From positions 1-33,209 of the forward strand of contig JAAPAO010000398.1 of assembly GCA_013115145.1 (NCBI GenBank): a stretch of 33,209 nucleotides of DNA. Direction: 5' to 3'. Shown in pieces: positions 153 through 19,731 of this stretch; the stretch's first letter is position 1; every line of letters begins with the position of its first letter. The notes under the pieces were generated by a model that saw only the letters and a program-made list of their open reading frames with translations, did not search any database and was not told the DNA's origin. The position numbers were made by a program, and so were the translations under genes. Origin of the DNA: Perkinsus chesapeaki ATCC PRA-425. Its lineage: Eukaryota > Protista > Perkinsozoa.

Positions 153-2076
153 ATGTCTATTCTCGAGCCGGTTGACGTAGTGATGGTTGGTACTGGTGAA
201 TACACCACCGGCTACGTGTGTGGTCAAGCCTCTAGAAGCGACAAAACAAAGGGGGTTGTCGGCCTTGTTATGTTCGACCTTCGTCGACTAGGAAAAGTCG
301 CATCTATCGGATGTGTCGGCACTAATGGTACCAAATTCCCCCTCATCCGTGAGCTGTTTGATCGCAACATTTCTAAAGCTTACAACGACGTAGACGTACA
401 GATGAAGACTTGGCCGGCCGATGTTGTCGAGAGGGACCCGGAGGCCTACAAGACGGCAATCGATTCCCTTCCCCGAGGCGGAGCAATAACAGTTTTCACA
501 CCCGATGCCACCCACTACGAAATTGCAATGTACGCGATAGAAAGGGGCATTCATGTGATGGTGACGAAACCGATGGTCATGACAGTTGAGGCTCATGAAA
601 GAATTATTAACGCTGCGAGAAAGCACGGAGTTTATGTCCAAGTGGAGGTCCACAAAAGATACGATCCGGTGTACGCAGACGCACGGGAAAAGATCCGGTA
701 CATAGAGAATTTTGGGGCCTTTCAACACTGGGATTCGGTGATGACCCAACCGAGAGACCAGCTGCACACGTTTAAGGCCTGGGCGGGGAGGAGCTCGGAT
801 ATCAGTTATTATTTAAACAGTCATCATGTCGATTATCATTGTTGGATATTAGATGGTAGGTTGAAGCGCGCAAGATACAAAGGAGGTCAGATTGTGGATA
901 TCTTTCAGGGTTAGCTGATCCAATTAGAGTGATGGCGGTTGGGTCTACTGGTGTGGCGAGTTCTGAGGAGTTTGGTTGCCCTGAGGGGACTGAGGATACC
1001 ATTACTATCATAGCCGAGTGGAAGAATCGTTGCGACGGCTCCATAGGTAGGAAAGTCACAGCTAAAATAGTGTTTACAAATTGTTACTGAGGAACCAGTA
1101 CCAGCTCGCCACGACGTAGACGCTTTCATTTGGCGAGAAGTTGTTTGGCACCGTTAGTAGTACTGAGGGCGGCTCTATTCAGGCACAGCGGTGTATATGG
1201 CTTCATGGGCTCATCCGGACAACTCAGAGGTTCACACTCAACAGAGGTTTATGTGCCTTGGCCACAAGGGGGAGATAAGAGCGGACCAGGCTCATAGAGG
1301 GTACTCAGTGACACAGAATAATAAGTAAGATAGTTTTGATTGATAAGAGACTTGTGAGACGAATCTTACGAACACTCTTGCATTTCTTGATTGACCACCA
1401 GGATAGTGGTAATAGTATTATTAGCATACTTGGTATAATTAATAATCAGATAATAGTGTGCATCTTTGCGTCCGGCGCTCAACCTGCGCAGGATGAAGCC
1501 ATACTCCTGTACTGGTCTGCCTGACCGCAGGAGTGCTGCAACTCAATAATAAAATAGTATATAATTTCTAGTTGTATAGTACTATTACTAATGATACCGT
1601 GTATTTCTCCACGCACCAACATCACAACCCCTTCGTTGGTGCTCGTAGGCATTTGTAGGATCGGAAAACAGTACAAGTGTTTGTACGATTAAAGGATAAA
1701 GACCATTTTCAAATGAGATTCCCTGGAGGTTGGTCTCCTTGCTGCATGGAACTCCTTTAGATACGCCTCGGTGAACCCTCTCTATATGAAGTACACCCCC
1801 GGTTTGGATGGCGAGTTTTCGGGCCAAAATGGTTACGGTTATCGATCGATTGAAACCTTTATCGATGCCTGTCGTCTCATCAATGCTGGCAAAGCTAAGC
1901 CGGAGGATTTCGACAAGCGTCTGCCAACTGCGGCGAGCACGCTCACCAGTACGGCGATTTTGGAGGCAGGTCGCCGAAGCCTGGATACCGGCGGGAAGTG
2001 GATCAGCATTCCTGATTTGATAGCTGGGAAGATTCCAGGAAAGATTAAATTCGCGAGAGAGGGACAGATTGTGTGA
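153..2076 (+). CDS. Gfo/Idh/MocA-family NAD(P)-dependent oxidoreductase, 4 exons (153-855, 909-1046, 1183-1324, 1761-2076)
   Basis: Rossmann start VVMVGTGEYTTG, followed by HVMVTKPM, EVHKRYDP, YYLNSHHVD, TEDTIT, DQAHRGYS and NPLYMKYTPG...GYGYRSIETF. GT-AG introns keep the frame. Confidence 0.88.
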
Positions 2077-2738
2077 GTTGTCGTGTCGTACGTTTTTTTG
2101 GAATAAGTTGTTTCCTGACGTTTGTCCCGTCTGTGAGTTTCGTTACAGGGTAATGCTTGTAGACATAGAAGAACACTTAATGTTCCGGGAATGAGCAATT
2201 GCTCTCACCTCTCAGGAACAATCTTCGACATTCGACGAACACATATCCTCGAGACTGTATCAGCGGGGTTCATTTTGCATCGTCAAGATATCTCTCGTAT
2301 TAATGGAAATTTGGCCTCTACATTGGAATCATCACCAATCCAGCTTCGTTTACAGCAGTTTCTATACCTTATCAATCTAGTCAACATCGGTATAAGTGCT
2401 AGCAACTTGCCTTCCTTGAAAGTCATCCTCGCCTTCAGTAATCTTTATTATCAATGCCTCGCAACAACTTTGGTAAGAGCCGTGGATCCCCTAGTCGTCG
2501 TGGCGGCGGAGGCGGCAACAACGCAGTCCAGCAACATTATTATCATGAAGTAACAGTTACTGATAAAGTCAGTCCTCCGACCAAAGGTGTGCTTGGGTGG
2601 ATGATGCCGGGGGGAAAGAGCTAGCTTCGAGCGCTAGGTGAAAAGTTAAAGTAGTGTAATGTGCCTGGGTGATGAGCGTGCGTGGTGGTGGTTCAACCTG
2701 GAGCAATCTCAGCTGCTAAAAATTATTGGTGCGGGGAG

Positions 2739-3607
2739 TTAATGGTTATCTGTGGAATCTTTAGTGAGGAGGATATACATATCACAAATTTGTACGGGGG
2801 GCCGAAGCATATAGTGTGTGCCTCGTTGTGAAACTGGTTCGCATTTTGCTGGTGATTCCGGTTGTGCAATCTGTCCCCTTTTAAGGTAACCGTTATGCTC
2901 CTCAAGCTGCTCCAACTGGAGGTAATAGAGCACTTGATGAATATATCGTTCAATAGTACATCACCAGGCACAGCTGATATACATCAAGTTTACGACCCAG
3001 AGCATATCATTGTAGGAGCTAGTCACAGCAAGACAGCACAGATGTTGGTTGACAGGGTAATAATTGTGGGACAGCGAGGCGAAGGCGGTATCCTACCACA
3101 CCTATCAAACTCAGTTCGGTTAGAAATATACGGAGTCATTCGCCGTTGCGTGGCGCATTTGCGCTACACCTCCGATGGCGGTTTGGCGACGAGAATATCG
3201 AAACGTGGCTGGCTCTGTGGTGCTGTTAGTTATCAGTTTATCCTTAAGACTGAGAAATCGTAACAAATATCCATATCCTGAAAACTCTCTCGCCTCTTCA
3301 AAGATTCTCACAGGCAAACCAGCATTCCCTTGATCAAAAGGGATTCTCATAATTCCCTCCCAGCGTCCTCAGTCCCGTTGAATTGATCGATTCCGGCTTG
3401 CGGGATTCGTTCTCGGTACCAATCAGGATCCAGTCCTACACGAAATTGTCGTTGATGCCATTCGTTATGCTGCGGAGCAATTTCATCGCCCTGGAGGAGC
3501 GGCTGGTAGGGGAGCCAGAAGTGAAGTTGGTGGATTGGATGATGAAGGTAATAGGGGACAGTGGGTTGTGTGCGACGGCAACTGTGGAGTGTTGGGATGC
3601 CCGACAC
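2739..3607 (-). CDS. Possible spliced hypothetical gene, exon structure unresolved
   Basis: Chain of same-strand 64-86 aa ORF pieces. No recognisable motif, and I could not build a consistent splice path. Confidence 0.22.
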
Positions 3608-4006
3608 TAATGTGACGAGAGATATTAGATAAAATATGAGTTATGAGGGATAATAATGAACTACTGATGATTGTGTGAAAAGTGTGGTTTAAACCGTGAG
3701 CGAGGCTCCTCGCGGGCGAGGGCTGCTGCTCCCCACGGCGCACGCACGCGTCACCACCACCTCAGCGAAATGAATCAGTGGAGCGCTGCGCCTGTGCTAC
3801 GGGGCGTAACTCCTAAACTGCTACGCAAACTCTCTAGAATAACTTCATCACTTCCTCAGGGCTAGCAGGGTATTTGGAGTTCTCAAGATTGGTTTGTCAT
3901 TACCTTCATAATCTAGCTCTGAAGAGTGATCCATTCCACAAGGCTCTCCTGTCTACCTCAACTGTGGTTGTCGGCAATATGGGCTTCTGCGGCAATATAC
4001 CGTGCT

Positions 4007-4889
4007 TCAGGTGAGTATCTTAGCTCGAAGCGTGCTTTTCGGATTTCGAGTGATTGGTGAAAGAATATTTGTAGTACGGAGAGCAGGGAATACATCACTA
4101 GTGAATCCTGAGATATCCGTGAGAGACTTTTCCCGGTGTTGGTGAGGAAATTTTTGCAAAAATTTTCCGAAAATTCGGTAAACTTTTCTACGCTCTGTGC
4201 GCTTTGTATTTTTGAGGCATGAGTGAGCAGATGGACGCCGCCCAGCTGATGAGCTGACGGCATTCTGCATCAAAATGTACAGTGCCATCGTGCCATCGCT
4301 GGATAGAAGGATTGAAACTGAATAGCTCATGTTAAAACGCTGATGGAGATGAAGCTCTTGTTCCGTCATGTTGCTCACCAAGCCGGAGCAGAACTGGGCG
4401 CGTGTCTTACAGGTATAAGTTGAGACTAGTTCTCCCCGAGCATTATGCCAGTCCATACAGCTATCGCACTAAAGATGCCACTTACAGTTGGTGCAATGTC
4501 TTCTTCTTGGAGCCACTGGAGGAGGCCAGCGCCGGGAGAAATCATCGTTAGAAGGAAGGTGTTCGTGTCGAAACTGACATGAAATGTGTGTTTAACTCAT
4601 GGTGTCTGTTATGGTAGCAGTTGAGTCGCGTTTAGATATTATAAATACGGTCTCTGTGTAGTGGTGGCTGTAGAAGAAGCTGTGGTTAGTTATTAACTGT
4701 ATTATTACCAGCTTCGTTACAGTATTCGCCCTCAAGAGCATTTGGGGAGCCCATAACAGCAACTGTACGCTTTAAGTCGGCTAGCACTGTGTGCCAATCG
4801 ACAAGATTCGGCGAAGTCCTCCTCTTGTATATTTTCCTGTCCTCGGAGAGAGAGACGTGGAAGACAGTCATCGAATTGTTCTCTGTCAT
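4007..4889 (-). CDS. Possible spliced hypothetical gene, divergent from PP4, unresolved
   Basis: ATG at 4889 opens MTENNSMTVFHVSLSEDRK...EYCNEA, followed by a GT donor, and a 149-codon open frame lies downstream. The join is uncertain. Confidence 0.28.
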
Positions 4890-5222
4890 TGGTTATTTTA
4901 TTCAACATTGATAACTCCTTAACTGCTAGTGCTGCCCTATTGATGAGGGGAAAGGGTTGAGGCGCTCAAAAGTGGCTACGCTTTCTTCATCTACTGTTAT
5001 CTGAGTTGTGGAGGCCAATACGTGTATATATATTATTATGCTCTGTATATCATTCACACGATCACTGTATTATATATAGTATTAATATATAATTAATTAT
5101 TAATATACTGTATTTGATACTATTGCTCTATTGATATCCTATTTTAACTTTCCACAGAGCCCACCAAAAGTGATGGCTTATATATTTCAGTGTTTTACTG
5201 GTGTCCCTCTAACACCATTCCT

Positions 5223-8200
5223 ATGAACGTCGCTCAGTTAGATCAGCAGATAGCTCGGCTTAGGAAGTGCGAGACATTACCGGCGAATCAGGTTAAAGGT
5301 GGTATGGGGATGGAGGGCTCGAGGCTGCTTCGATAGAGTATCCCACACCGGGCTTTCGAACTGCGCATCGAGTCGATATAGCTCCGATCCGATCGTCTTG
5401 GGTGACATATGCTTACTATCGGATTGTGATCTATAGCCGCTGGTTCGGGGAGGAATGGTGGCGAGAGTATACTTGCTCAAACTCGTCGCGAGCAATATTA
5501 TTGTATAACCCCCGGAAGGGTGTTATCGGTGATAGGTGCAGGGTAGATTATCACAAGGCAAAAGCTTGAAGGAGTCTCTTGTCAAAAGTGTAATGATTAT
5601 TACACCTAGCAAGAGACAATAGAGATGTAGCGCAAGCTGGATTTAGGGGACAAGCGAGGCGATTAGGTTTATCTCGCGGGGAGGCGTGTGTGAAAGTGTA
5701 GACTTGGAATGTTACTTGAGTTTTCACTGGCGCTTGGAAATGTTGCCGATGGACCGGCAATAGTAAAGACCTGCTGACAGCGTTCCGTCAGAGCTATGCT
5801 CGCTGTGCCGTGATATCTTGATAGAGGAGGATAATATACAACGAGTTGAATCGCCAGTTGTTATTTGTGGAGATATCCATGGGCAGTTTTACGATCTTAT
5901 GGAGCTCTTCAAGGTACTACAGGAGGAAGCGGCCGCCGCGGCGACGGTGTCGTATTCTCACAGCTTGTCATTTTTGCTGTGATGATGAAATGGTGTAGGC
6001 GATGCTTTAATGGTGAATATACGTATATTTCTGATGGATAATTTATAATAGCTATGAAATGCCGAATTTCTTGTGGCGTATTTTTTATAAAAAGTTTTAT
6101 TGTTATTTGTATGTATACAGTTTAGTCCAACGCCGATCCGAATGCGGTATCGATTGAATAGAAGAATAAGATAGCATTGGATCGGACATTCCTAGGCTTT
6201 CGCAGAGCTACACGACTCATCTCAGCGTGATCCCTTACTTGTGGGAAGTTCAAGTATTCAAAAATGGGTGGTGGTAATATATATTAAATTTTTTGGGGAA
6301 ATTATTTCCATGAATTTCTCAATTTTCGGTGAGCATAGATATATCGCTTTTGAGCTTGAACGGATTCTTGTTGATTTGTGCGCCGCCGCTGCCCGGGTCG
6401 AGACACACGTTATCTAACTTTTCAGGTTGGTGGGGACTGCCCGGAGACAAACTATCTATTTCTGGGCGATTATGTGGATAGAGGCTTCTATTCGGTCGAG
6501 ACACTTCTACTGTTGATTGCTCTGAAAGTAAGTATAAGCTTGTGCAACGTGCGACGTGGCACTCGAAAATAGTGGTGAAGCTGCGGCGGCTTCTTGCGAG
6601 ATTTGTGAGGGTCTGGGCGTTGATTACTTATTGGACATGCATTTTTTCAAAATATTGTTGTTTATTGCATATTGATTTTGGTCCTCAGAACTCCTTGAAG
6701 CTTGAAATCGCAAAGTAGGGAACATCGTAGTGGCAGTTTAGGACTGTCGAAGTCGCGCTTAGCATAGACGTATCTACCTATCTTTGGCAAATTTCTTAAA
6801 TCTGTTGAGGGTCTGAGTAATAATAGGTGCATCGATCCTCTTATAGATGCGCATCTGTTGGTTATGACTAGTAGATTATTATAAGTATCAACACAATACT
6901 TCAGGAGATAGGATCTCGATTATACATCGAGTGAGTCAAACATGACGACTTTAGCCTAGCTTTAGCTACAGCACAGAATCATCTTTGCTGGGGCGCGATC
7001 CACGGCAACAGTTATACGTACGGCTGGATGCAGTGACATAGAATTATTGAAATCTCACACAGTTGTAACGTGTGACACATCACATTTTGAGAATGTGTCA
7101 TCAAATGGGAATTGAAAATAGTACACTCAATCGATCAACTATGACTAAGCATTGATATCTTGGCGAGCCAAGTTTTCAGCGCTCGTAGAAGTGAACTGGA
7201 CAGATGTGATGGATGCTGAAATTGTAGTGTTAGTTTTACTTTGAGAAGGTGCGCTTGGCTTCTCCTGCTGCTGTTGCTGCGGAGTTTCGATCAGCTTGGA
7301 GCTACCGCATTGGTAATGTTGATAGTTGTAATGAGAAGATGGTCATTAGTGTTAAATGCATTACCAGTCATATAGAGAGAGGGAGTCGGTGGGCACCTGT
7401 AACTTGTTCGAGAATAGTAGTAGACAAATAAATGAAGCTTTAATGTCTTGTAGATAGACTTTAGAATAGAGCTTGCTTGAGGCAGCAGCAGCAGCAGCAT
7501 CGCTGAAATGGTGAGTGTTATTTTGTCAGGTAAGGTATCCCGACCGAATAACATTGATACGAGGAAATCACGAGTCGAGACAGATTACGCAAGTGTATGG
7601 TTTCTACGACGAGTGTGTCCGCAAATTCGGGAACGTAAGATCGCCTAATCACTGGCAGGTCGTTGAGCGTTTCACAGGTTAATGTTTGGAGGTGCTGCAC
7701 GGATTTGTTCGACTACATGGCCCTGAGCGCGATTATCGACAATAAGGTTTTCGCAGTCCATGGAGGACTGAGCCCTGCTTTGTGAGCTGATAGAGGGGTT
7801 TGTGGTGAGCTATAGTGAGTGGCAGGCATACGATGGATGAGATTAGATTGATTGATAGAAAACAGGAGGTTCCGCATGAAGGGCCGATGTCGGATATCAT
7901 GTGGTAAGCTACAGGCTTACCGTTTACCGACTAGCATGTCAGTGTATCTTAGGTCGGATCCAGATGACATCAGTGGATGGGCCGAATCTCCTCGTGGAGC
8001 TGGATGGTTGTTTGGCGGAGATGTTGTGAAGTAAGTCTAAGATGCTAGTGTCTAGAGTGAGAATCTCTTGTTTACATCGATGCTTATATTCGCAGTCTTC
8101 GTGGTTTACTCTATCTCCGCTTGCTAAGAGAGTGTTCGCTAGCAGGCCTTTTCCAACGGTCTGCAGCTTGTGTTAGGCAACACGTGGAAGCGGAACACTT

Positions 8201-8901
8201 GTCGATGATGATAGACTGGCAACGTTATTAATAAATTTTCTTCAGAGGCGCTTGTTCCATCTTGTAGGGTATGTACCGCATGGCAGCTTCGGGTCGGGTG
8301 AACTCGGCAAGAATGTCGTCCTTTCCCTGAGTCTTAGTGCCCCTGGTAACGGTGTGGCAGAGGTGGCCCTTCTCACTCCCTCGCACCGGCACCTTGCAAG
8401 GCACTGAGGACAAGGGGGAGAATAAAAGGAAAACAATTACATGCGAAATACGCTGCTCTCCCCGAAAGTGTTGTCATTCCTTGTTTACTGCCACCTGGCT
8501 TTAACCGAAACTACAAATACGTTGATGCGCTTCATAGACGTCATTTATGATTCAGGCAATGGAATCATTCCAATTCGATAACGCTCATCGCCAGAGCACA
8601 TCAGCTTGTTATGGAAGGCTATAAGATGATGTTTGATGATCAGCTTTGCACTGTGTGGAGTGCACCTAACTATTGTTATAGGTGAGTGGCACACCGCCGC
8701 TCCACTGGGGTTCTGGATTCGGTCCCGAAATCTGGTTTTTATCACCTTGGAAGTTGGTATCTTTTTTTCAGGTGTGGTAATATTGCCAGCGTGCTGTGTC
8801 TCGACGAGCAGTTGAATATGGATTTCCGAACCTTCCATGCAGCTCCGGCGGAGGAGAGGGCCCTCCCCGCCAGGAAGCCGATGCCCGATTATTTTCTGTA
8901 A
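5223..8901 (+). CDS. PPP4C: Ser/Thr protein phosphatase 4 catalytic subunit, 9 exons (5223-5298, 5792-5913, 6426-6527, 7530-7634, 7678-7781, 7826-7903, 7953-8030, 8556-8681, 8772-8901), 306 aa
   Basis: PPP motifs GDIHGQ, GDYVDRG, RGNHE, HGGLSP, WSDP, RAHQ and [12 protein letters not shown] are present. The C-terminus RKPMPDYFL and the VQRV(E)SP region fit PP4 better than PP2A or PP6. Exons sum to 921 nt in frame. Confidence 0.93.
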
Positions 8902-9547
8902 CTGTTCCTACGTCCCAAATGTGAACAACTTGAGTTGCGTTGATGACGTCATGAGAGCTGCTGCGGACAGTCCGAACTCGGAAGGACATAAGATGCATTA
9001 CGTTAGATGATGACAACGCGGCCACTGTGAAAAAATTTCAAAACAGTTTGCGTGGAAAACTTTTTGAGCAGCTAGGATGGATGCCCTATGTGTCGCATAC
9101 GGTAGCGTTAAAAGCAATTGTAGAGGTGTCTGAGGGCCTCTTATACAACTTAATAAATGTCGAGAAACTTCAAAATCACCTTTCATTAAAGTGATGACAA
9201 TAGTATGAAATTGACAGTTGAAAAGGTCCTTGCAAAGCCTTCCAAGCAGATCGCGATGAAAGTTTATATCAAATCTTTATCCGTCATAGATTATAGCGGT
9301 TTTCAAAGTGACCAGATTAGCATTAGCAGGGGAAATATGGATTATATTTTTGATAGTCCAAGGGAAACGTGGTGAAAATAAAACCATCACGCAATTTGGA
9401 ACAGGATAACAGCAGTCAACAGATGGCGTTACTAGCGCACTGTATAGGGGACACTTAAGGCACGACACAACTGAACTACATGAAGCGGAGAGGTGAAGAG
9501 AGGCTAAAACAGGGACAATCCGAAGGTATACAACTTGAACAATGAAA

Positions 9548-9558
9548 GCATTCCGAAA
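9548..9558 (+). repeat. Left copy of an 11 bp direct repeat (putative target-site duplication), GCATTCCGAAA
   Basis: 10/11 match to 13049-13059. Each copy lies 1 nt outside the end of an inverted arm. Confidence 0.7.
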
Positions 9559-9650
9559 TACTTTAATAACAAAACAGAGCTAGTACTGAGATACACATTA
9601 ATATTATTATTTAAATCATTATTATCAAAAATATGGGTCAATATATTGAC

Positions 9651-10058
9651 TTAGCAATAATAGGGTTCACCCTCACACTCATCATCAGTTGGGGCGAAAC
9701 AAAGACTTCCATCATCCTTCTTAATAATACCAAAACAGACCTGAGGATCCTGCCAGGTCTTGCAGTAAGAACCCCACTTGGAGTCACGACACTGAGGCAT
9801 GCCATTGCAGATATCTTGACAACTAGGTTGGGGCTCGGGACAGGCAACCGGCTCGAGAGTGTAGTCATCACAGGTATCCTGCTCAGTGGGTTGGAAGCAA
9901 TAACCATCATCTTGGTGATAAAGACCAAAGCAGACTCCATTACCCTTACAATAAGAACCATACTTAGAATCAGCACAGGCCGAGTGACTGTCACAAATAT
10001 CCTGACAATACTCGGCAACGGCAACAGTGAAGGCAACAGCAGCGATGGTGAACTTCAT
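9651..10058 (-). CDS. Secreted cysteine-rich protein, copy 1 (135 aa, two 8-Cys domains), intronless
   Basis: Signal peptide MKFTIAAVAFTVAVA, then a tandem domain C-x3-C-x5-C-xDSK(Y/W)GSYCK...VCFG...DDG..CF.PT...C...P..C. Polypyrimidine tract plus CAG acceptor lies just upstream. Confidence 0.9.
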   Translation of the reverse strand: MKFTIAAVAFTVAVAEYCQDICDSHSACADSKYGSYCKGNGVCFGLYHQDDGYCFQPTEQDTCDDYTLEPVACPEPQPSCQDICNGMPQCRDSKWGSYCKTWQDPQVCFGIIKKDDGSLCFAPTDDECEGEPYYC

Positions 10059-10191
10059 GGAGAAGAGATAATTAATCAACTGAGAAACAGGAAATAAGCG
10101 TACGGAAGTTTTCCACCAAGGAAGATGGTCATATATAATTGATAAATGTTACTATAGCTGAAGTACCAGAAGTGAAGCACCTTTTGAACTA

Positions 10192-10215
10192 CATGCACGC
10201 ATGCACAGCATGCAC
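10192..10215 (-). promoter_or_regulatory. Three tandem GTGCATG motifs upstream of Cys-rich gene copy 1
   Basis: CATGCAC occurs at 10192, 10200 and 10209 on the + strand and mirrors 12392-12415. Confidence 0.4.
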
Positions 10216-11107
10216 CTCTTGTGTCGAAAGGCTTGTGAATTCTTCGCGTTGCGAAACGTAACCGATTGACAGATCTTTGATGCTATTCTAGAAGGACCGC
10301 TGTAAATTGGCCTCGGAAATGTAGGTGGAGTATTCAGCTCCAGCTTTTAAGTGACGCCGATCTGACAAGATAATACTTATACCGGAGAAAGTATCGAGGG
10401 AATAAGCAGCCGATACTCCTCAGTTTAGAGTCAGAACTGGGTCCCATTGTAATGTGAGAGCCGTTTAATATATATTCTGATAACACTTTCTCGTTTATCT
10501 TCGAGCTCTTTTGCCAACAACCGGGGGATGTATTAAATCTATCTGATAAGAATATTGTAGTCGCTCACCGTTCCAATATGAACGGGAATCCGACAGAGGC
10601 CGAACCAAGACATTACCTCAGACATCACCGGGCCTCAAGCCCTGCTTCAGTGCATTAAGAAGCTGTACATCTTCGATTCCATTTCAACCTCGTTAACATC
10701 GTGAATCAGTCACTTGGACCAAGTGCTTATGGTACGCCCACCACTATTTCAGTTTTGTGTATCACGTACACGTGTATAACTGGATGATCCAGTCTGGACC
10801 AGCCTAGCCGATTAGCCGTTGTACCGGTGTGACTTTAGTAACGCAACTCCGAAATCGGGGAAACGAAGGTTTGAATAATGGCTAACTCGATATGGGCCAG
10901 AATCACTATGAGCGTAACAGACAACTCGCCGCCACAAATTTAGACTCTCATTTTGAGAGGAATGTTGAGAAGCCGAGCTTCGTTGAATAATTTCGATCCG
11001 CGCTCCAGGGAAAGGATGGAGATCATCCCCATCTTATTGGTATTGTCTCGACGATATATGATAAGAGTTGTAGTATTAACAATGTCTTTCGCAACAACAA
11101 CCACGAA

Positions 11108-11722
11108 CTAAGCGGAAGTTGTGTTGAAGGCGCATACTCCAGCGATGCCAGTATTGAAGCATATAGCCCCTTCCTGACAGTCTGTGTTCTGAAAAAGAAA
11201 ATGGTAAAAGTGCAAATGAGATAAAGAGACTCGCCCTCACCTTATCACAGAGAATGACGCATAAACCTGGTGGATTGCTGCATCTTGGCTTGTTCTTAGC
11301 CGGACCGTTCGGACAGGGCCCCTCCAGACAACTCGGCGTGCAAAAAGATATCCTGTGGTCCTGAGTCAACCGATCTTCTGGTTCCCGACAAGAAGTACTT
11401 ACCTTGTAGAAATGTGCTGGGTACTGTTTAATCCCTCCGATGGCCGGGCAGACATCTTTGGAGCCGATCTCCCCGTAAACTGAGATAATGCAATGCCCCG
11501 GCTCGAGACTCCTGAGCTCCAACAGAGACTTACATTCCGATCCACGAAGTTTGTTCGGGATATTCTCAGCCGATGATATAGCACTAAAGAATCCCCTGAA
11601 ACGCTTCGTGTGTTCACACAAGGATGAAACCTCTACATGGATTCAGACTCGTAAGGGTGATTTGAGTCAGCCATAACAGTGCCGATCATGTAGACTAGGG
11701 AGTAAATCCCGATGAGAAGCAT
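11108..11722 (-). CDS. Secreted cysteine-rich protein of a different family, 5 exons, about 140 aa
   Basis: Spliced product MLLIGIYSLVYMIGTVMADS...FCTPSCLEGPCPNGPAKNKPRCSNPPGLCVILCDK|NTDCQEGAICFNTGIAGVCAFNTTSA*. Four short GT-AG introns keep the frame. Confidence 0.78.
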
Positions 11723-12391
11723 CCAAGAGCGTGGGGTAAAGGAAAATTGAAACTAACCGACAGGACATTCGTTACTTGAAATAGGTCAAAGTTCGCCGCT
11801 TTTTTGCAGGAAACGGTACCTGTAGGCTGCCGCTCAACGTGACGCCACGTCGGAAGCCTACGTCACTGTCGTTTGCACAGCTTATGCGCCTTGACTTGTG
11901 GAAAACGAGTCCTCCTCACAACTGCCATCGTACGGTACAATTTGTACCCTCCAACTTTCGAATGAGCAGCGTACTTCTGAATGAGCCGCGTTCGCACCGC
12001 GCGGCGTACCGTGAGCAACCGATAACGGTCAGTAGCAGCCGGGCTGTTTTCAAGAGGCTCAAACTTCATATGTAGTCTTCATAATGTAGAGCCGAAGTAG
12101 AACTAGCGAATCTGATCTATAACGGTTTTTGAGGCCAAGTCACACGTCAGTCGTATGCTAGTTATTGTTAACTAAATTTAGCTTCTGCACTGGAGGGTGA
12201 GCTACGCATATTGCATGATGATCGGTAGTTATCACGGCCATCTCGCTAAGCAGATCCTTGAGCAGATGAGATTTTCGCGCAGTCTACGGTAACGCGACTA
12301 GCAGGGGACATGAGAGATCAACAAATAGATTCCAATTCTATTTGGTTACGTTTCGCAACGCGAAGAATTCACAAGCCTTTCGACACAAGAG

Positions 12392-12415
12392 GTGCATGCT
12401 GTGCATGCGTGCATG
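12392..12415 (+). promoter_or_regulatory. Three tandem GTGCATG motifs upstream of Cys-rich gene copy 2
   Basis: GTGCATG occurs at 12392, 12401 and 12409, about 135-155 nt before the ATG. Confidence 0.4.
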
Positions 12416-12548
12416 TAGTTCAAAAGGTGCTTCACTTCTGGTACTTCAGCTATAGTAACATTTATCAATTATATATGACCATCTTCCTTGGTGGAAAACT
12501 TCCGTACGCTTATTTCCTGTTTCTCAGTTGATTAATTATCTCTTCTCC

Positions 12549-12956
12549 ATGAAGTTCACCATCGCTGCTGTTGCCTTCACTGTTGCCGTTGCCGAGTATT
12601 GTCAGGATATTTGTGACAGTCACTCGGCCTGTGCTGATTCTAAGTATGGTTCTTATTGTAAGGGTAATGGAGTCTGCTTTGGTCTCTATCATAAAGATGA
12701 TGGTTATTGCTTCCAACCCACTGAGCAGGATACCTGTGATGACTACACTCTCGAGCCGGTTGCCTGTCCCGAGCCTCAACCTAGTTGTCAAGATATCTGC
12801 AATGGCATGCCTCAGTGTCGTGACTCCAAGTGGGGTTCTTACTGCAAGACCTGGCAGGATCCTCAGGTCTGTTTTGGTATTATTAAGAAGGATGATGGAA
12901 GTCTTTGTTTCGCTCCAACTGATGATGAGTGTGAGGGTGAACCCTATTATTGCTAA
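12549..12956 (+). CDS. Secreted cysteine-rich protein, copy 2 (135 aa; one residue, K vs Q, differs from copy 1)
   Basis: Same features as copy 1, with the acceptor-like sequence cttatttcctgtttctcag upstream of the ATG. Confidence 0.9.
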   Translation: MKFTIAAVAFTVAVAEYCQDICDSHSACADSKYGSYCKGNGVCFGLYHKDDGYCFQPTEQDTCDDYTLEPVACPEPQPSCQDICNGMPQCRDSKWGSYCKTWQDPQVCFGIIKKDDGSLCFAPTDDECEGEPYYC

Positions 12957-13048
12957 GTCAATCTTTTAACTCATATTTTTGATAATAATGATTTAAATAA
13001 TAATATTAATGTGTCTCTCAGTACTAGCTCTGTTTTGTTATTAAAGTG

Positions 13049-13059
13049 GCATTCTGAAA
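13049..13059 (+). repeat. Right copy of the 11 bp direct repeat, GCATTCTGAAA
   Basis: 10/11 match to 9548-9558. Confidence 0.7.
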
Positions 13060-13336
13060 GGGTGGTAATCGGAATTCGAATATTTTTCGTAAAAAAGGAT
13101 ATTACTTCAGCAGTCTTATAATTCTGACAATGCATTGCATTCAATTCGGTTAACTGTCGGATGCGTTTGATAGACTATCATTTCCTGCACTGTCTCTTTG
13201 ACAATTCTTGTTGTACTTTGTTCGTAATTCCTGCTTTGTGATTGTGTTGAATTATTTCCATTGTATTCATGCATTTTCAACGCAACCAAGCATCTTGCCA
13301 TGAGCAACATCATATTCTCCATCGCCATTATCATGC

Positions 13337-14830
13337 TCAATGCCTAGTCTCTGGCATTTTAGGGTCAACCCAGTCCGGGACGTAGCATGGCGAGTAAGGC
13401 TTGTCTTTGGTGTAGGCATGAGGGTCGCAGTTCTTCTTGCGGGTCTGAGAGAGTTCATTATGCAATTTGGTTGAAGCACCGCAGCCGCTACCTGCGGAGG
13501 AGTCTCCCCAACTGACTGCTTTGATCGGAGTTGACCGGATTTGTTCTAAAAATGTAAGCATTCTCTGCGACACAAAATATGTCCCATTCTGTAACACTCA
13601 CCTTGATGGCCAAGAAGGACTCATTCTCACTCGGAGCTGTCACGGCACCGACCGCCTGAGCAGCCTGAGCGACCTCGGCAACCTTATCAACTGGTGGCGC
13701 GGGCTCTTCAGGCAACTTGGTAGCGTAGCGTCCAACCTGATAACAACACAAACTTCAACCTTCAAAGAGCTTGGGAGTTCACCTCGTCCCAAAGTTCAGA
13801 TCCAGAAGTTCGGTGAGAGATATCAAGTTGAACTTTCTGAGAAAGAAGGCAAATGTCCAGCGCGGTTGGGAGGAGCCTTACCGTGGCCTTTGGAGCCGTT
13901 TGTTGAACAACACCACCGCCCTCAGCCTCTACTGGGGCAGGAGCCTCAGGCTCGAAGTTCTGACAAAGGCAACAACATCGTAGTAGCCTATGGGGAGCCT
14001 ATCCGAGCTCACCTCGGAAGCCTCAATGGATTGGATCACATCATCCGTATTAACGGGACTCTGGCTCACTTCACGGATGGCTTGGATCGACTGGCCATGC
14101 TGAAAAGGGAATCAGAAGAGCGGCGATTATTCGGTGAAGTTCCTACATCACATCCGAGCTCCTTCTTGGCCTCCGCGACGAGAGCATCATCCGAAGTCTG
14201 CAGCTGCTGGCGGAGGTCATCGACTCTAATATTACACAAAGCTTCACAAATGATGCACTTGTGCACTCACTCGGGGGAGTCGAAAAGGCCCTGTGTGGTC
14301 TGCTGCACCGGCACCTTTCCAGTGACGTACTTTGAAGAATCAAGCTTGACTGGGAACCTGGCAAGTCCCGCCATCATCGACGGGTAGGCCGACGCTCGAG
14401 CATCCTTACTGTTTCTCATCCCATTCGGGACGATACGCGTGGAACTTTGGCTCGGTCGGCTTCAGTTCTCGAGGACGATTCACCTTGTTCGTCAGCGACT
14501 CAAAATCACCACCTTGCGGCTCCAACAAAGGCTGATCTTTGTTCCACTGAGACAAGCAAGTCACGCGCCGCGAAACTACGCGGCAACGTTACTGTAGCGC
14601 CCATGTCGAGGGCCTGATAGTTGGGCTCGTACTCGGTATTGAGGGGTTCTTCCTCAGTTAGCTCCACTGGTCGCTCGACCTCCACCGATTCGGTCTGAAC
14701 AGGCGAGGCCGGTTGGATGATGATGAGCTAACCCTGTAATTCTGCTCACTGGCTCTTCGTGTGTCCTAATCCTCAAGGCGTTGGCAAGTAGAGACAATGC
14801 CCCGACAAGTGCGATGGTGGTGCGAATCAT
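13337..14830 (-). CDS. Secreted acidic/Pro-rich protein, paralog B, 11 exons
   Basis: Signal peptide MIRTTIALVGALSLLANA and ten short GT-AG introns, all in frame. Ends with KKNCDPHAYTKDKPYSPCYVPDWVDPKMPETRH*. Confidence 0.85.
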
Positions 14831-14935
14831 TATTAATAGGAATTTAGTAGTAGCTGTTGGAAGGCAATCTCAGAGGGTAGAAAACACAAACCTTAAATGT
14901 GGACACCGCACACCATGCCGTAAACGCGGCGGCTT

Positions 14936-16867
14936 TCACCAGCTTTGGATCACTTTGTGACCGGAATGGCGAAGGAAGGATCTGACCAAGTCAGCCAACA
15001 GCAGTCAGGCCGAGGGAGCGACGCCCTGAGCGACTTACGTTTTGACCGGCAAGGCTGCGGCAGCGGCCGCAGCTGAGCCCTCCACCACAGTGGCTGCTGG
15101 AGTGTCCGCTGTTGTGCTGCCCTCTCCTCCTTCAGACGTGCTGGGGGTCGACACTTCACTCTCGGGTGAGGATGCGGCCGCGGCGCCACTGGCAGGACGT
15201 AACGAGTGAGCAATAAAACGGATTATGTTAGTAAACTCGGACTCACCTAGTTGCTGGCTCTCCATTTTTCATTTTCTCAGCGGTTGGATCTTCCCAAATG
15301 GGTCTGTAGGGGCAGGGATGATACTCCTCGCGAGATGTCGAGTCGTAACCTTCTTCGCAAGGCTGAACAGGAATGAGATATGAAATAGCTAAGCTGGTCG
15401 AGCACGTTGATTGACATCTAAAGGTTGCGAGTTCCAATCCCTCACCTCACCTTTTCTTTCTCGCCTTCTATGGCCTTTTCCTCACTGGCAGCCGCGGCCT
15501 CCTGAGCTTCACCAGGGCTCGAGGAGCTCCTTTCCAGGAGCGATTCCGAGGAAGTCTCCGAGGTTGGAGGTTTCTCGATCGTTGCAGCCTCTTCGACGTT
15601 GTCCACGTGCCTGCTCCCCGCCGCAGCTACTGACCCACGAGGCAGGTGACTATGAGCCTTACTCTTTTAGCTTCCCTTCTCTTATGTCCTGAACTCGCTT
15701 AATCAGCCTCTCTCGGTGAGCCTCGGAGTCGACCTTCTCGCGTTCCTTAATGTTCATTCTAGCACTCTTTGCATGTTGCAATGCCTGACAACGAAACAGA
15801 CATAACCCCACTGGAAGGTGGTCTCGGGTTCGATCCCGGCGGCTGCGTCCACTTACTGCATTAAAAATGTCTCCTCCAGTCTCTCGATTGACATCCAGCT
15901 TGACAGGCTAACAAAGCAGCAGCAATCGTCAATTACACCGCATCACTCCAGCATACCTCTGGTTCCTTCTCAGCCTCTTCGTCCGCCGGCATCTCAGTGG
16001 GCACAGCTTGGGCGGGCTCGGGAGTAGATACCTGCATGTCACGACGGTCGTGGGTTCGAACCCCGGTGACGGCAACTTACTCCTGGCGCCTCGACCTTAT
16101 CAACTGCAGGATCCTCCTGTATGGGGTTCTCGGCGATCGCTTTGGCCTCCTTCATCGCAGGACTTTTCTGGAATCAGAAACTTGCACCCAGGTTCGATCC
16201 GCGGCTGGTAACCTCTAGCTCTTTCTCTGCCTTCGCCGCAGCCGGTGATTGATCCGGTGGTCCGTTGGCTTCTTCTTCAAGATCGTCGAACCTAACACAG
16301 AGTACACTGCCTTCCATTCAAGGAGGAGACTCACGCTTGACCAGGGTCGCTGAGGACCTTCACAGCCTCGGCCTTTACTGGGACAGCACCCGAGCAGGTC
16401 GGTCGCCGAAAGTATTTGGTCACCCTAAGACGATAGCCGAAATCAATGTTATACATAAACCTGATTCGTCTACTCTTTAGCGTCGATACTGTAGTCACGA
16501 ATCGCGAACTTCGGTTCGGGTTCCTTTGGTTTTGGCGGCACAGCCTCGGAGCCGACCATGACGCTGAAGTCGGCTCCTTTGTTCTCCAACTCAGGAAGGT
16601 CATCAGTAATCTCCTGAAGATAGCACGCATGCACAAACAAAGACCGCGAATCAACCTCAAGAGTATCTTTACCTTCATTTTTTCGACCTTCTCAGGTTTC
16701 GGTTTATCCGCTGTCGTTTCGAGGACATCTCCAGGATCATCGACCTTGTGTTCTGGTAAATCGTCCTTTACGAATTCCGCGTTAGTATCCGGTGACTCCC
16801 TTATAACGCCCCTCACTAGAGTTGCTATGATCGTCCATATTAAAGTCGTTCGGTAGAGATATGTCAT
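14936..16867 (-). CDS. Secreted acidic/Pro-rich protein, paralog A, 12 exons
   Basis: Signal peptide MTYLYRTTLIWTIIATLVRG and eleven 43-88 nt GT-AG introns in frame. Shares GADF/GGDF..EPKF, DDL, KEL, V(K/Q)LD and C..PCxx.PxWxDP blocks with paralog B. Confidence 0.83.
15379..15451 (+). pseudogene. Degenerate full-length tRNA-like sequence, antisense inside intron 9 of paralog A
   Basis: TAGCTAAGCTGGTCGAGCA (A box and D arm), then ATCTAAAGGTT, then GAGTTCCAATCC (B box), at exact canonical tRNA spacing with no indels. Acceptor and anticodon stems do not pair. Confidence 0.65.
15819..15851 (+). pseudogene. tRNA 3'-half remnant (Gly-like), antisense inside intron 7 of paralog A
   Basis: GGTC-TCGGG-TTCGAT-CCCGG-CGGCTGCG-TCCA: variable loop, T arm and acceptor 3' strand. 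Confidence 0.55.
16045..16074 (+). pseudogene. tRNA 3'-half remnant, antisense inside intron 5 of paralog A
   Basis: CGGTC-GTGGG-TTCGAAC-CCCGG-TGACGGC-A: 4 of 5 T-stem pairs, canonical spacing, directly followed by the antisense donor ACTTAC. Confidence 0.6.
16186..16213 (+). pseudogene. tRNA 3'-half remnant (Gly-like), antisense inside intron 4 of paralog A
   Basis: CCAGG-TTCGATC-CGCGG-CTGGTAA-CC resembles a tRNA-Gly 3' end of the type CCGGG-TTCGATT-CCCGG-CTGGTGC-A (recalled sequence, about 19/24 positions). Confidence 0.45.
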
Positions 16868-16949
16868 AATTGAACAGTAATGGCTGCAGTCGTCCTCGCT
16901 TACGTGGGCCCCAATCTACATTTTCTCAACGCCTACTCAGTACATATCT

Positions 16950-17094
16950 CCCGAAATAGTCAATTAAACCCGAAATAATAACCACTATCACATTTCATTG
17001 ACAGCAGAGTCCAGCAACCTCCCCTGCGCAAAGCTGCCGTTCTACGATCGCAGCCTGCCGCGAAGTTGCGCCGACAAAAGCGCACGCCCGAAAT
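16950..17094. promoter_or_regulatory. Bidirectional promoter region with three copies of CCCGAAAT
   Basis: 270 bp lies between divergent ATGs at 16867 (-) and 17138 (+). The 8-mer occurs at 16950, 16969 and 17087. Confidence 0.4.
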
Positions 17095-17137
17095 TGTGAA
17101 CTTGTGCGTCCCAACGAAATGAGCGCCTCACCGCCGG

Positions 17138-19731
17138 ATGAACCTTCCTTGTTTACTTATCATCCCTTACTTGCTTGTAGGGGCAACATCACCGAGCTTC
17201 GTGAAAATAAAAAGTCTCGAGGAGTTCAATAAGGCTATTCATGATAATGATTTCGTTGTTGCTGTTTTTGGATCAAAGTGGTGTGGTCGGCTTTGCGTCT
17301 GGGCAGCTCGAGCGGTAAGCATATAGGGACCGGATGGATTATCACTCAAACGAATCACAGATGATCACTCACTGGATGATCAAACAAAAAACCTTACCAC
17401 TGAATTTTCCTGCAGTGCAAGTGACGGTGTATTTCGGGAGCGGTAAGATGTTATTTACGCCCACTGCACGAAACGAGTTCCGGTGTTTTGCCCATTGTAC
17501 AGCTCGCTCACCGATGAGTGCTGTTGGTGTTTGTAGTTGACCTGGTCGCAGGTTCTTGAAACGGCTAAAATCCTACCGAGTGACCTTAGTGGCGTGCATG
17601 GTCAGGATGAAGCCGACGAATTGGTGATACCGATTTTTCCGACGATCCGATTGAATTCGGGGTATACCTTCCCTCAGGAAGCTTTAGACCATCCTGACAA
17701 CGGCCTTCTCCTGTTGAAGGTCGATGGTGGTCGAAAGGTCAATGGGGAGATCCTGGCTCAAGAGAGTGTGCTGGGATACCCTGCGATACACTTATATGTC
17801 AGGGGCTACAAGCATGTGTAGGCCGAGGTTCGATCCCCAGGCCATCCATTTTTACTCCAATAGGTTCGAGATGGCGTACCGTACGCCAGAGCTGCTTCAT
17901 CCGTGGATCGTGTTTATTATCTCCCACAGTCCGATTCGGCTGAGTGCCTCCCACGGATCCGCTTGCGCGGGGATCTTGGACCTTCCCGTCGGGCTCGTGG
18001 CGCTCCTTCGTGCGCCAGAGGGGACCCTTTGGAATGTTATCAACAATTTGGGGAGTAAGTTACATTTGTGATAGCTCCCCCAGAGCGGTCTGATTCGCGG
18101 GCACGCGTGACCTTGCCAGCTTACGCCGATTCTCGCATATATTTCGCAATCGACCGCAATCGAACGAAGGATGAGATGGTCTACTGCACCTCGGAGGGGC
18201 TCACATTACCGTTCCCCTCACTGAATGCTGATGACGCTCCCGAAGATGTCCGGAAGGCTGCGGGGATGTTTTTGGACCGCCATACGACCAAGAGGGTAGC
18301 TGGTCAATTTATATGGCTGAGTCTACCAACGACTTAGGTTACTCTGCTCGATCCACAGCGGGTTCATCGCTACGTGTCCGGTGGATTCCCGATGGTTGTA
18401 TTTGTTCTGGTCGCAGTGGACTTAAAGGGGGCGCGAGAGAGACTGACAGAATTGGAGCCATCTGCGAATCAATTATCCTCAACGGATTTGTGGAATATAT
18501 GGATCCCAGCACTACCGGAAATTGCGAATGTCATGGACGAGTTGACCGAGTCGTCATGGATACATCTTCGGAAGCGTAAGGTCGTGACCTCCACATATTT
18601 TCTTCGGTGTATGTGTCTCGTCATCTTCTATTGCCTGTTCCGGCGGTCTACATCTTCCTCTGCTTTCGAAGCTGCTGTTGCCCATACATACCACGACTCA
18701 ACCGCCTAGCCAGTGACGTTCGACAAAACGACAAGACTGACGAATGGTTTCTAAAATCCGTTTAAAATCGTCGCATTTTCATTTTGAGATGTTCTCTATC
18801 GCAGACTTTGACATCGACGGAGCTGCCGACATCCTCACTGTTGTCGTTCCCCATGTCCCCAGCTCAGACATCGGTCTCTGGCGCTCGCCAGGCAATGGTC
18901 CCAGCCAAGATCAACTATCATCGGTAAGTTGGAGGAGGCCACCGACTTCCACGGGGACTTGTCCTTCTCAGGTCGCCGAGGCGTGGGAGCTTTTGCACGG
19001 AGTGCAAGTGATGCTTAACCAGTGGTTCGGCTTGGATACAACAAACGGCAGATCGAAGGTCGGAAAAACTGACACGATTCTCACAGGCCGATTTGCAGCA
19101 GCTCCTCGCCTACGAGCCTTTCGAGGAGCGAAAATATATTTTGGAGCTGGACGGTGGTGACCTGCCGGAAGCCATTGGGAGTTTTGTTGCTGATGTGGTC
19201 CGTGGGGGTATCGAACCGAGGCGAATCGCTCAAACGCATGAGAGTGCGTCTCGGGCGGTGCAAGAGGTAGGCGGACGCGAATAGGTTTCAGAATCTCTAA
19301 AGTGGAATATCTTGCCAAGCTACGGCGCCTCTGAATTGCAGATACACCCCTCCATCGAGGCGATGACTACGGACACTATACCGAGATTTATGAAGTCTCC
19401 GATGACTCCAGTCCAGTTGCATCTACTTCTCGTTTATGCGCCGTGGTGCGTGCACTGTGTAACATTCATGTGGCATGTTCTGCGGCCTCTCGCCGAGAAC
19501 AGTATCAGCGAGCAGCTCGAAATTTTTGTCATCGACGGCACGGCGAATGAGCTGCCACGAACGCTACGCGACCATGTGGAGGGCTATCCGACGTTGTTGA
19601 TGCACGATGGTGATGTGATGTCAAGCTATCCCATGTACGACACTGCGAATATGATGCACGTGTTGGAATGGATTAAGGAACACTTTAACATGGCTGTCGT
19701 TTCGGTGGAATCTGATCGGGAAGAACTATGA
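17138..19731 (+). CDS. Protein disulfide isomerase/thioredoxin-family ER protein, multi-exon
   Basis: Signal peptide, then FGSKWCG, LKVDG...GYPAIHLY and a b'-like KYILELD...IGSFVADVVRG. The last domain has YAPWCVHC...IDGTANEL...EGYPTL, and the protein ends in REEL*. The first-domain splice path is unresolved. Confidence 0.82.

Follow-up and report, generated by a model that had tools for sequence, protein, structure and literature searches.

Oysters and clams have major parasites in the genus Perkinsus. A single locus of Perkinsus chesapeaki bears on the ways in which the lineage-specific families of secreted proteins of these species may expand and relocate. The DNA analysed, called the window throughout, is the complete contig JAAPAO010000398.1 of assembly GCA_013115145.1, 33,209 bp long. 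Between the 3' ends of two convergent genes it holds a palindromic cassette in which two inverted copies of a secreted-protein gene bracket a unique spacer with a putative gene of its own, and an 11-bp direct repeat flanks the whole. The cassette is missing as a block from the corresponding site in two other Perkinsus genomes. The block appears to carry the signature of a one-step insertion, and its two gene copies show signs of ongoing gene conversion.

Architecture of the palindrome

A repeat search of the window returns a single long inverted repeat, with a left arm at 9560-10263 and a right arm at 12344-13047 (704 nt each, 99% complementary) separated by 2080 nt, the same coordinates at which the initial annotation had placed it. 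Base-by-base comparison of the arms finds 10 mismatches and no gaps, or 98.6% identity. Read in the sense of its gene, which lies on the minus strand in the left arm and on the plus strand in the right, each arm consists of 205 nt upstream of the start codon, an intact coding sequence (CDS) of 408 nt and 91 nt of 3' flank; these measurements bear out the earlier description of an upstream region, an intact CDS and some 90 nt of 3' flank. The spacer (10264-12343, 2080 bp) is unique in the repeat search and stands at single-copy depth in the contigs described below.

One nucleotide outside each arm lies a copy of the direct repeat GCATTC(C/T)GAAA, which resembles a target-site duplication (TSD): GCATTCCGAAA at 9548-9558 on the left and GCATTCTGAAA at 13049-13059 on the right, identical at 10 of 11 positions. 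The putative inserted unit is the 3490 bp between them (9559-13048). In sensitive BLAST searches past all four arm ends the inverted repeat did not extend, even in degenerate form, into spacer or flanks, and the flanks share neither inverted similarity nor direct similarity beyond the 11-mer. The initial annotation had claimed both the repeat at this distance and an end of homology there, and both are seen, with sharp ends. Sampling two million random flank pairs from the window put the chance of a direct repeat of at least 10/11 near both ends at 1.4e-4 for an offset of at most 1 nt and at 6e-4 for an offset of at most 5 nt.

Tandem sub-repeats were absent from the arms in the repeat search, which found one 18-nt motif pair only, 161 nt apart. 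The outer member, TAATAACAAAACAGAGCT (9564-9581), sits beside the arm terminus and recurs at 16 of 18 positions inside the CDS (9725-9742), where it encodes a conserved VCFGII motif; the pair is mirrored in the right arm at 13026-13043 and 12865-12882. It may be due to chance, or may be a trace of the origin of the 3' flank.

The arm gene and its family

The left-arm CDS (9651-10058, minus strand) is intact and unannotated in the public record, while that of the right arm (12549-12956, plus strand) is annotated and transcribed. Both specify 135 amino acids (aa), with glutamine at residue 49 on the left and lysine on the right. This K49Q replacement is the only non-synonymous difference between the arms; the others are four synonymous changes and five in the 3' flank. 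The product has a signal-like N-terminus and two cysteine-rich repeats with 16 cysteines, of which the family alignment shows 12 to be invariant and 4 nearly so. Its 18 homologues all come from P. olseni, P. marinus, P. chesapeaki or environmental contigs, and the arm protein belongs to a family restricted to Perkinsus and related marine sequences. No Pfam domain was found in it, and its AlphaFold model (mean predicted local distance difference test score 78) has no fold match in the PDB. Matches in the AlphaFold database with an E-value below 0.001 carry Perkinsus-type accessions, and several are larger proteins that contain the module. Among these Perkinsus-type entries the cysteine-rich module is seen at the N-terminus of proteins of 260-460 aa.

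Transcription of the right copy can be read from a 454 metatranscriptome contig that spans 12526-12869 with one mismatch and has the right-arm state at every arm-distinguishing site within it. In this contig position 12526 is preceded by CGTAGCCATTTTGGCTCA, which corresponds to the spliced-leader body known from dinoflagellates and Perkinsus. The leader joined at 12526 and the right-arm states together show that the right copy is transcribed and undergoes trans-splicing, with the AG at 12526-12527 (plus strand) as acceptor, leaving a 5' untranslated region (UTR) of 21 nt (12528-12548). With 99.7% identity to the window, this contig points to P. chesapeaki-like cells that expressed the right-arm gene in that marine sample. 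Two samples, from 2020 and 2022, differ in their coverage of the family: the 3' part of the CDS (9704-9887) reaches about 13 times single-copy k-mer depth in the 2022 sample and about 3 times in the 2020 sample, and a paralogue contig of 176 nt, about 91% identical, occurs in the 2022 sample only. Copy number of the family, or its expression, may differ between the samples.

At other loci the family is arranged differently. In the tree the two window copies pair with each other and fall in an unresolved group with three P. olseni genes (P0001-P0003) and two P. marinus genes (P0004 and P0005), whose loci share only the family gene with the window and with one another. Synteny was sought with the loci of these closest members in P. 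olseni and P. marinus (L001-L003 and L006-L008) and rejected, as only the CDS matches and the sites are paralogous. An older pair of paralogues, P0006 of P. chesapeaki and P0007 of P. olseni, has a DSBA-domain neighbour in common; conservation of position is therefore detectable in this family, and the subfamily of the arm gene has moved. At other loci and in other species the family genes stand singly or in direct tandem arrays, never as inverted arms.

Homology of the gene units between species runs from the trans-splice acceptor to the stop codon or shortly past it. Within P. chesapeaki, a paralogue in sample S1 has the 3' flank in common up to a point some 30 nt short of the arm end, its contig ending at 9621 with a similar loose end. 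Most of the arm "terminus" is therefore ordinary 3' UTR. Several peculiarities were seen at the loci compared. In P. olseni the cysteine-rich module also occurs fused to other sequence: in a 292-aa gene with a PT-rich tail built from a 12-nt tandem repeat (L002, 5831-7296), and in a gene model that joins a DnaJ gene to a family copy (L001, 1-5055). In P. marinus at least nine copies of a tandem repeat of about 53 nt stand directly upstream of P0004 (L006, 8785-9377).

The spacer

Public annotation places a gene (P0024) on the minus strand of the spacer at 11108-11722, encoding a 141-aa orphan with a hydrophobic, signal-like N-terminus and a cysteine-rich C-terminus; an alternative model with three introns gives 159 aa. 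A search for homologues with its main exons returned the gene itself alone, its product is unrelated to the arm protein, and no RNA contig among those examined lies over it. In the 2022 sample the last exon carries, at 11170-11172, an insertion of 6 nt along with two substitutions; the insertion is in frame, which is weakly consistent with the orphan being coding. The initial annotation had counted a third secreted gene in the spacer. The annotated 141-aa frame and its hydrophobic N-terminus agree with that description; the gene, with neither homologue nor RNA support, is putative and unproven.

The longest open reading frame (ORF) in the spacer, of 181 aa, lies mostly inside the orphan gene and has no significant Pfam match, and the unit therefore contains no transposase. 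Nor do the bases from 8000 to 14500 contain a tRNA or an Rfam family.

The unit in independent assemblies

The palindrome sits in a draft assembly, and the inner 342 nt of its arms are identical, beyond the reach of short reads for orienting the spacer. Both points could be taken to favour an assembly artefact in which two copies, allelic or paralogous, have been collapsed or joined into a chimera. The layout was checked in Logan contigs, which are not raw reads, from the 2020 sample (X5) and from the independent 2022 sample (X1 and X3). In both samples the flank contigs enter each arm by exactly 30 nt (k-1). One contig consists of the spacer with 30 nt of each arm (10234-12373), and the identical inner part of the arms (9922-10263 in X5) forms a separate contig at double depth. 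The depths in X5 are 124 for the left flank, 130 for the spacer, 121 for the right flank, 207 for the outer arm and 270 for the inner arm. All four junctions and both sets of arm-specific variants are recovered in contigs of the two samples.

The sole path through the contig graph is flank, arm, spacer, inverted arm, flank. This fixes the order only; given the identity of the two arms over their inner 342 nt, the contigs are silent on the orientation of the spacer. Flanks and spacer have equal depth, which means that all copies of the locus carry the cassette, and no contig of either sample links 9558 to 13060, that is, no empty allele is seen. With a single-depth spacer contig, flank contigs and double-depth arms agreeing in two independent samples, we reject an assembly artefact as highly improbable.

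The orthologous site in other Perkinsus genomes

To the left of the cassette lies a gene for a Metallophos-type protein phosphatase (2549-8901, plus strand), its 3' end toward the cassette, and to the right a convergent gene for a 737-aa protein (P0019; 13337-16867, minus strand). Both are conserved, with collinear counterparts in P. olseni (L009) and in a third genome of the genus, represented by 13.3 kb of a Logan contig from run SRR12548988 (L010). The P. olseni locus is collinear with the window from 175 to 31,865 and the third genome from about 400 to 19,000. Used as a query, exon 1 of the right-hand gene finds the 737-aa protein of the window and a 375-aa protein of P. olseni.

Homology to P. 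olseni ends at 8914, just past the Metallophos stop codon, and returns at 13332, at the stop codon of the 737-aa gene; collinear blastn and tblastx matches on the left side end at 8914-8931. The interval between the two convergent genes is 370 bp in P. olseni, 482 bp in the third genome and 4417 bp in the window. Within 10-kb flanks, neither the arm gene nor the spacer gene was found in either genome. On these alignments the whole cassette is lineage-specific, a new result; gain and loss are not polarised by it. The initial annotation had suggested looking in other strains or species for an empty site with one copy of the repeat. The whole unit is indeed missing from the interval in both genomes. 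A single GCATTCYGAAA is not seen in the intergenic DNA of either, which is too diverged to align with the window or for an empty-site sequence to be recognised. Aligned with each other, P. olseni and the third genome share more sequence, and higher identity in a fast-evolving gene, than either does with the window, and they are probably sister lineages.

Probable gene conversion between the arms

All 10 mismatches between the arms fall within the outer 362 nt, which has a probability of (362/704)^10 = 0.0013 under a uniform distribution. The 3' flank is 5.5% diverged (5 mismatches in 91 nt), and the upstream region has none in 205 nt. Selection could not hold 342 nt identical, synonymous sites included, amid a drifting non-coding neighbour, and the pattern is best read as arm-to-arm conversion of the inner part. 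The distribution of the mismatches thus indicates that gene conversion between the arms probably keeps the inner 342 nt alike. If so, the duplication would be older than the overall identity of 98.6% suggests. The single mismatch in the 11-nt direct repeat would fit the age implied by the level of divergence between the arms.

Origin of the unit

How did the palindrome come to lie at this site? Insertion of the whole 3.49-kb palindrome as a unit, with duplication of 11 bp of target, has in our judgement an even chance of being right. A complete palindrome would have entered the site between the 3' ends of the two conserved convergent genes in one event. Integration at a staggered cut, either of the transposase type or as a one-off insertion by repair or recombination, would have duplicated 11 bp of the target, and arm-to-arm gene conversion would afterwards have held the inner 342 nt of the arms identical. 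Insertion at a staggered break is favoured because a direct repeat around the whole palindrome is its prediction, at a chance of 1e-4 to 6e-4, and because the block is missing in two genomes. The relocation seen in the subfamily of the arm gene is in keeping with it. We infer that the flanking repeat is a TSD and that the unit was gained in P. chesapeaki rather than lost in its relatives.

Several observations weigh against such an insertion. Only one instance of the flanking repeat is at hand, so that a target-site duplication is not established, and the palindrome was picked out of very many inverted repeats, among which a few chance repeats this good are expected overall. The exact empty site is unreadable, the intergenic DNA being unalignable between species; and since the two other genomes are probably sisters and an outgroup is lacking, a single gain in P. 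chesapeaki is just as parsimonious as a single loss in the ancestor of the other two. The unit itself has no transposase, no known transposon termini are recognised at its ends, and the outermost base pair of the 3490 bp (T...G) is not complementary. Contig k-mer depth in the two samples corresponds to only two arm copies and one spacer copy genome-wide.

Much of this would suit the main rival, an inverted duplication in situ, which is possible though somewhat doubtful. Here the gene and the spacer would already have stood at the site, the 704-bp unit would have been recopied in inverted orientation 2 kb away by template switch or break repair, gene conversion would keep the arms alike, and the flanking repeat would be a coincidence, the scan being large enough for chance matches with p around 1e-4 to 1e-3 to be expected. 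The first copy at the site would have been gained earlier, or lost in the olseni lineage. Complete functional gene units as arms, differing in coding sequence by only four synonymous changes and one non-synonymous change, are in keeping with this course, as are the conversion gradient typical of palindromes, the presence of the arms just twice in the genome and the lack of transposon features. What duplication in situ does not predict is the symmetry of the direct repeat, 1 nt from both arm ends (p = 1.4e-4). Moreover, the inner junctions are without the microhomology or filler of a template switch, and a separate event must have placed the first copy, with the orphan spacer, where two relatives have nothing.

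Other routes to the palindrome were considered and set aside. After an inversion between staggered breaks, the left inner junction should contain the right outer flank in inverted copy, and that copy is absent. Two separate insertions of 704 bp would each have left their own target duplication; none was found. Retroposition is ruled out, as the arms begin 184 nt before the trans-splice acceptor.

Taken together, insertion as a block is likely, and membership in any transposon family is unsupported. The locus offers a clean, dated example of two secreted-gene copies and an orphan present as one palindromic block at an otherwise collinear site. Should the flanking repeat prove to be a genuine target duplication, palindromes that bear genes could be moved as units in the P. 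chesapeaki genome, tying Mutator-type transposons to the dispersal of secreted genes. Otherwise the locus would still serve as a compact model of how a palindrome drives the concerted evolution of a parasite gene.

Further observations in the flanking genes

Three contig or frame anomalies concern the flanking genes. At 8683-8770 a short contig of the 2022 sample (X1 and X3), with roughly double the depth of the window haplotype and absent from the 2020 sample, skips 86 nt. These are exactly the last Metallophos intron, as judged from P. olseni exon matches, and the contig has C>T at 8649 and 8805; it may derive from an intron-less paralogue or retrocopy, or from RNA in a library labelled DNA. 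Sample S1 shows an apparent alternative haplotype; one of its contigs runs from exon to exon over a Metallophos intron and may thus stem from a paralogue, a retrocopy or RNA in the library. On the other side, a contig of X1/X3 matches the window to the right of 13329 and extends leftward for at least 255 nt, carrying a diverged, indel-bearing 13299-13329; it may represent a second allele of the right intergenic region. Finally, a 306-codon open frame on the plus strand (13467-14387), opposite the annotated 737-aa gene and overlapping its 3' exons, has no Pfam match and may be an antisense ORF artefact or a sign of a mis-stranded gene model.

Comparison with known systems

Could the arm genes themselves be the ends of a transposon? 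Mutator-like elements (MULEs) leave TSDs of 9-11 bp. The initial annotation had proposed a non-autonomous transposon in which effector genes form the terminal inverted repeats (TIRs), and part of this proposal holds up: the block is missing in two relatives and the TSD-like repeat is unlikely by chance. A family of copies, which the proposal also implied, did not appear. The arm terminus was not found elsewhere in the roughly 200 kb of Perkinsus DNA searched, and k-mer depth allows for two arm copies only. As it stated, the unit has no transposase, and no known transposon ends are recognised at its termini. As a special case of insertion, a strict non-autonomous Mutator-like transposon, with the gene copies as 704-bp TIRs whose outer ends a MULE transposase would recognise and with an 11-bp TSD, is unlikely. 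It does account for the absence of the unit from the orthologous site in two genomes, and the long inverted ends match a MULE hallmark (PMC3310237). The 11-bp flanking repeat is of the length of MULE TSDs. Set against it are a unit that is single-copy, ends not seen to resemble any MULE TIR, a paralogue whose 3' flank agrees with that of the arm until some 30 nt from the terminus, as expected of a gene's UTR and not of a transposon end, and family genes that are never arranged as TIRs at five other loci.

The cassette is accordingly not classed as a MULE, being neither multi-copy nor bounded by dedicated, conserved termini. That inverted functional genes for secreted proteins act as the TIRs of a cassette movable by a Mutator-type transposase is a tentative idea, which we consider unlikely. 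Were such a TIR-like role true, any inverted duplication of a gene for a parasite surface or secreted protein could become mobile, spreading the genes and the DNA between them.

Known systems resemble the cassette in different respects. MULEs and Pack-MULEs have long terminal inverted repeats of hundreds of bp, carry host gene sequence and include non-autonomous members without transposase (PMC3310237, PMC5861414). The cassette likewise has long inverted ends, a flanking repeat in the 9-11-bp range and no transposase. Pack-MULEs, however, are multi-copy and hold gene fragments between dedicated TIRs with conserved termini, whereas the arms of the cassette are complete genes and the unit is single-copy. 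A parasite genome is also the setting of the Tm1 Mutator/Foldback family of root-knot nematodes, a low-copy family with a 9-bp TSD, long inverted ends and the virulence-linked gene Cg-1 inside (PMC3169594). The cassette shares with Tm1 its setting in a parasite genome, its long inverted ends, its low copy number and a gene within. The TIRs of Tm1, in contrast, are composite arrays of short repeats, and they define a family whose members have related termini and whose transposase is of the Phantom type; the arms of the cassette are without tandem sub-repeats and without a family. Composite TIRs with short tandem sub-repeats, the hallmark of Foldback-type elements (FB and Tm1), are thus lacking in the arms.

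The palindromes P1-P8 of the human Y chromosome, reportedly described by Rozen and colleagues in 2003, are said to bear genes and to be kept by arm-to-arm gene conversion. Near-identical inverted arms, a unique spacer, intact expressed genes and an identity pattern of the conversion type are common to them and to the cassette. The Y palindromes differ in measuring tens of kb to Mb, in having arisen in situ and in having no flanking TSD-like repeat, whereas the cassette is 3.5 kb long and missing as a block in relatives. Bacterial composite transposons consist of an insertion sequence, cargo and a second insertion sequence in inverted orientation; the block moves as one and is flanked by a target duplication, and its arms encode the transposase. 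The arms of the cassette differ in encoding a secreted cysteine-rich protein without nuclease or transposase features. In layout, the composite transposon is nevertheless the closest of these systems, since in both cases inverted, complete gene units bracket a cargo.

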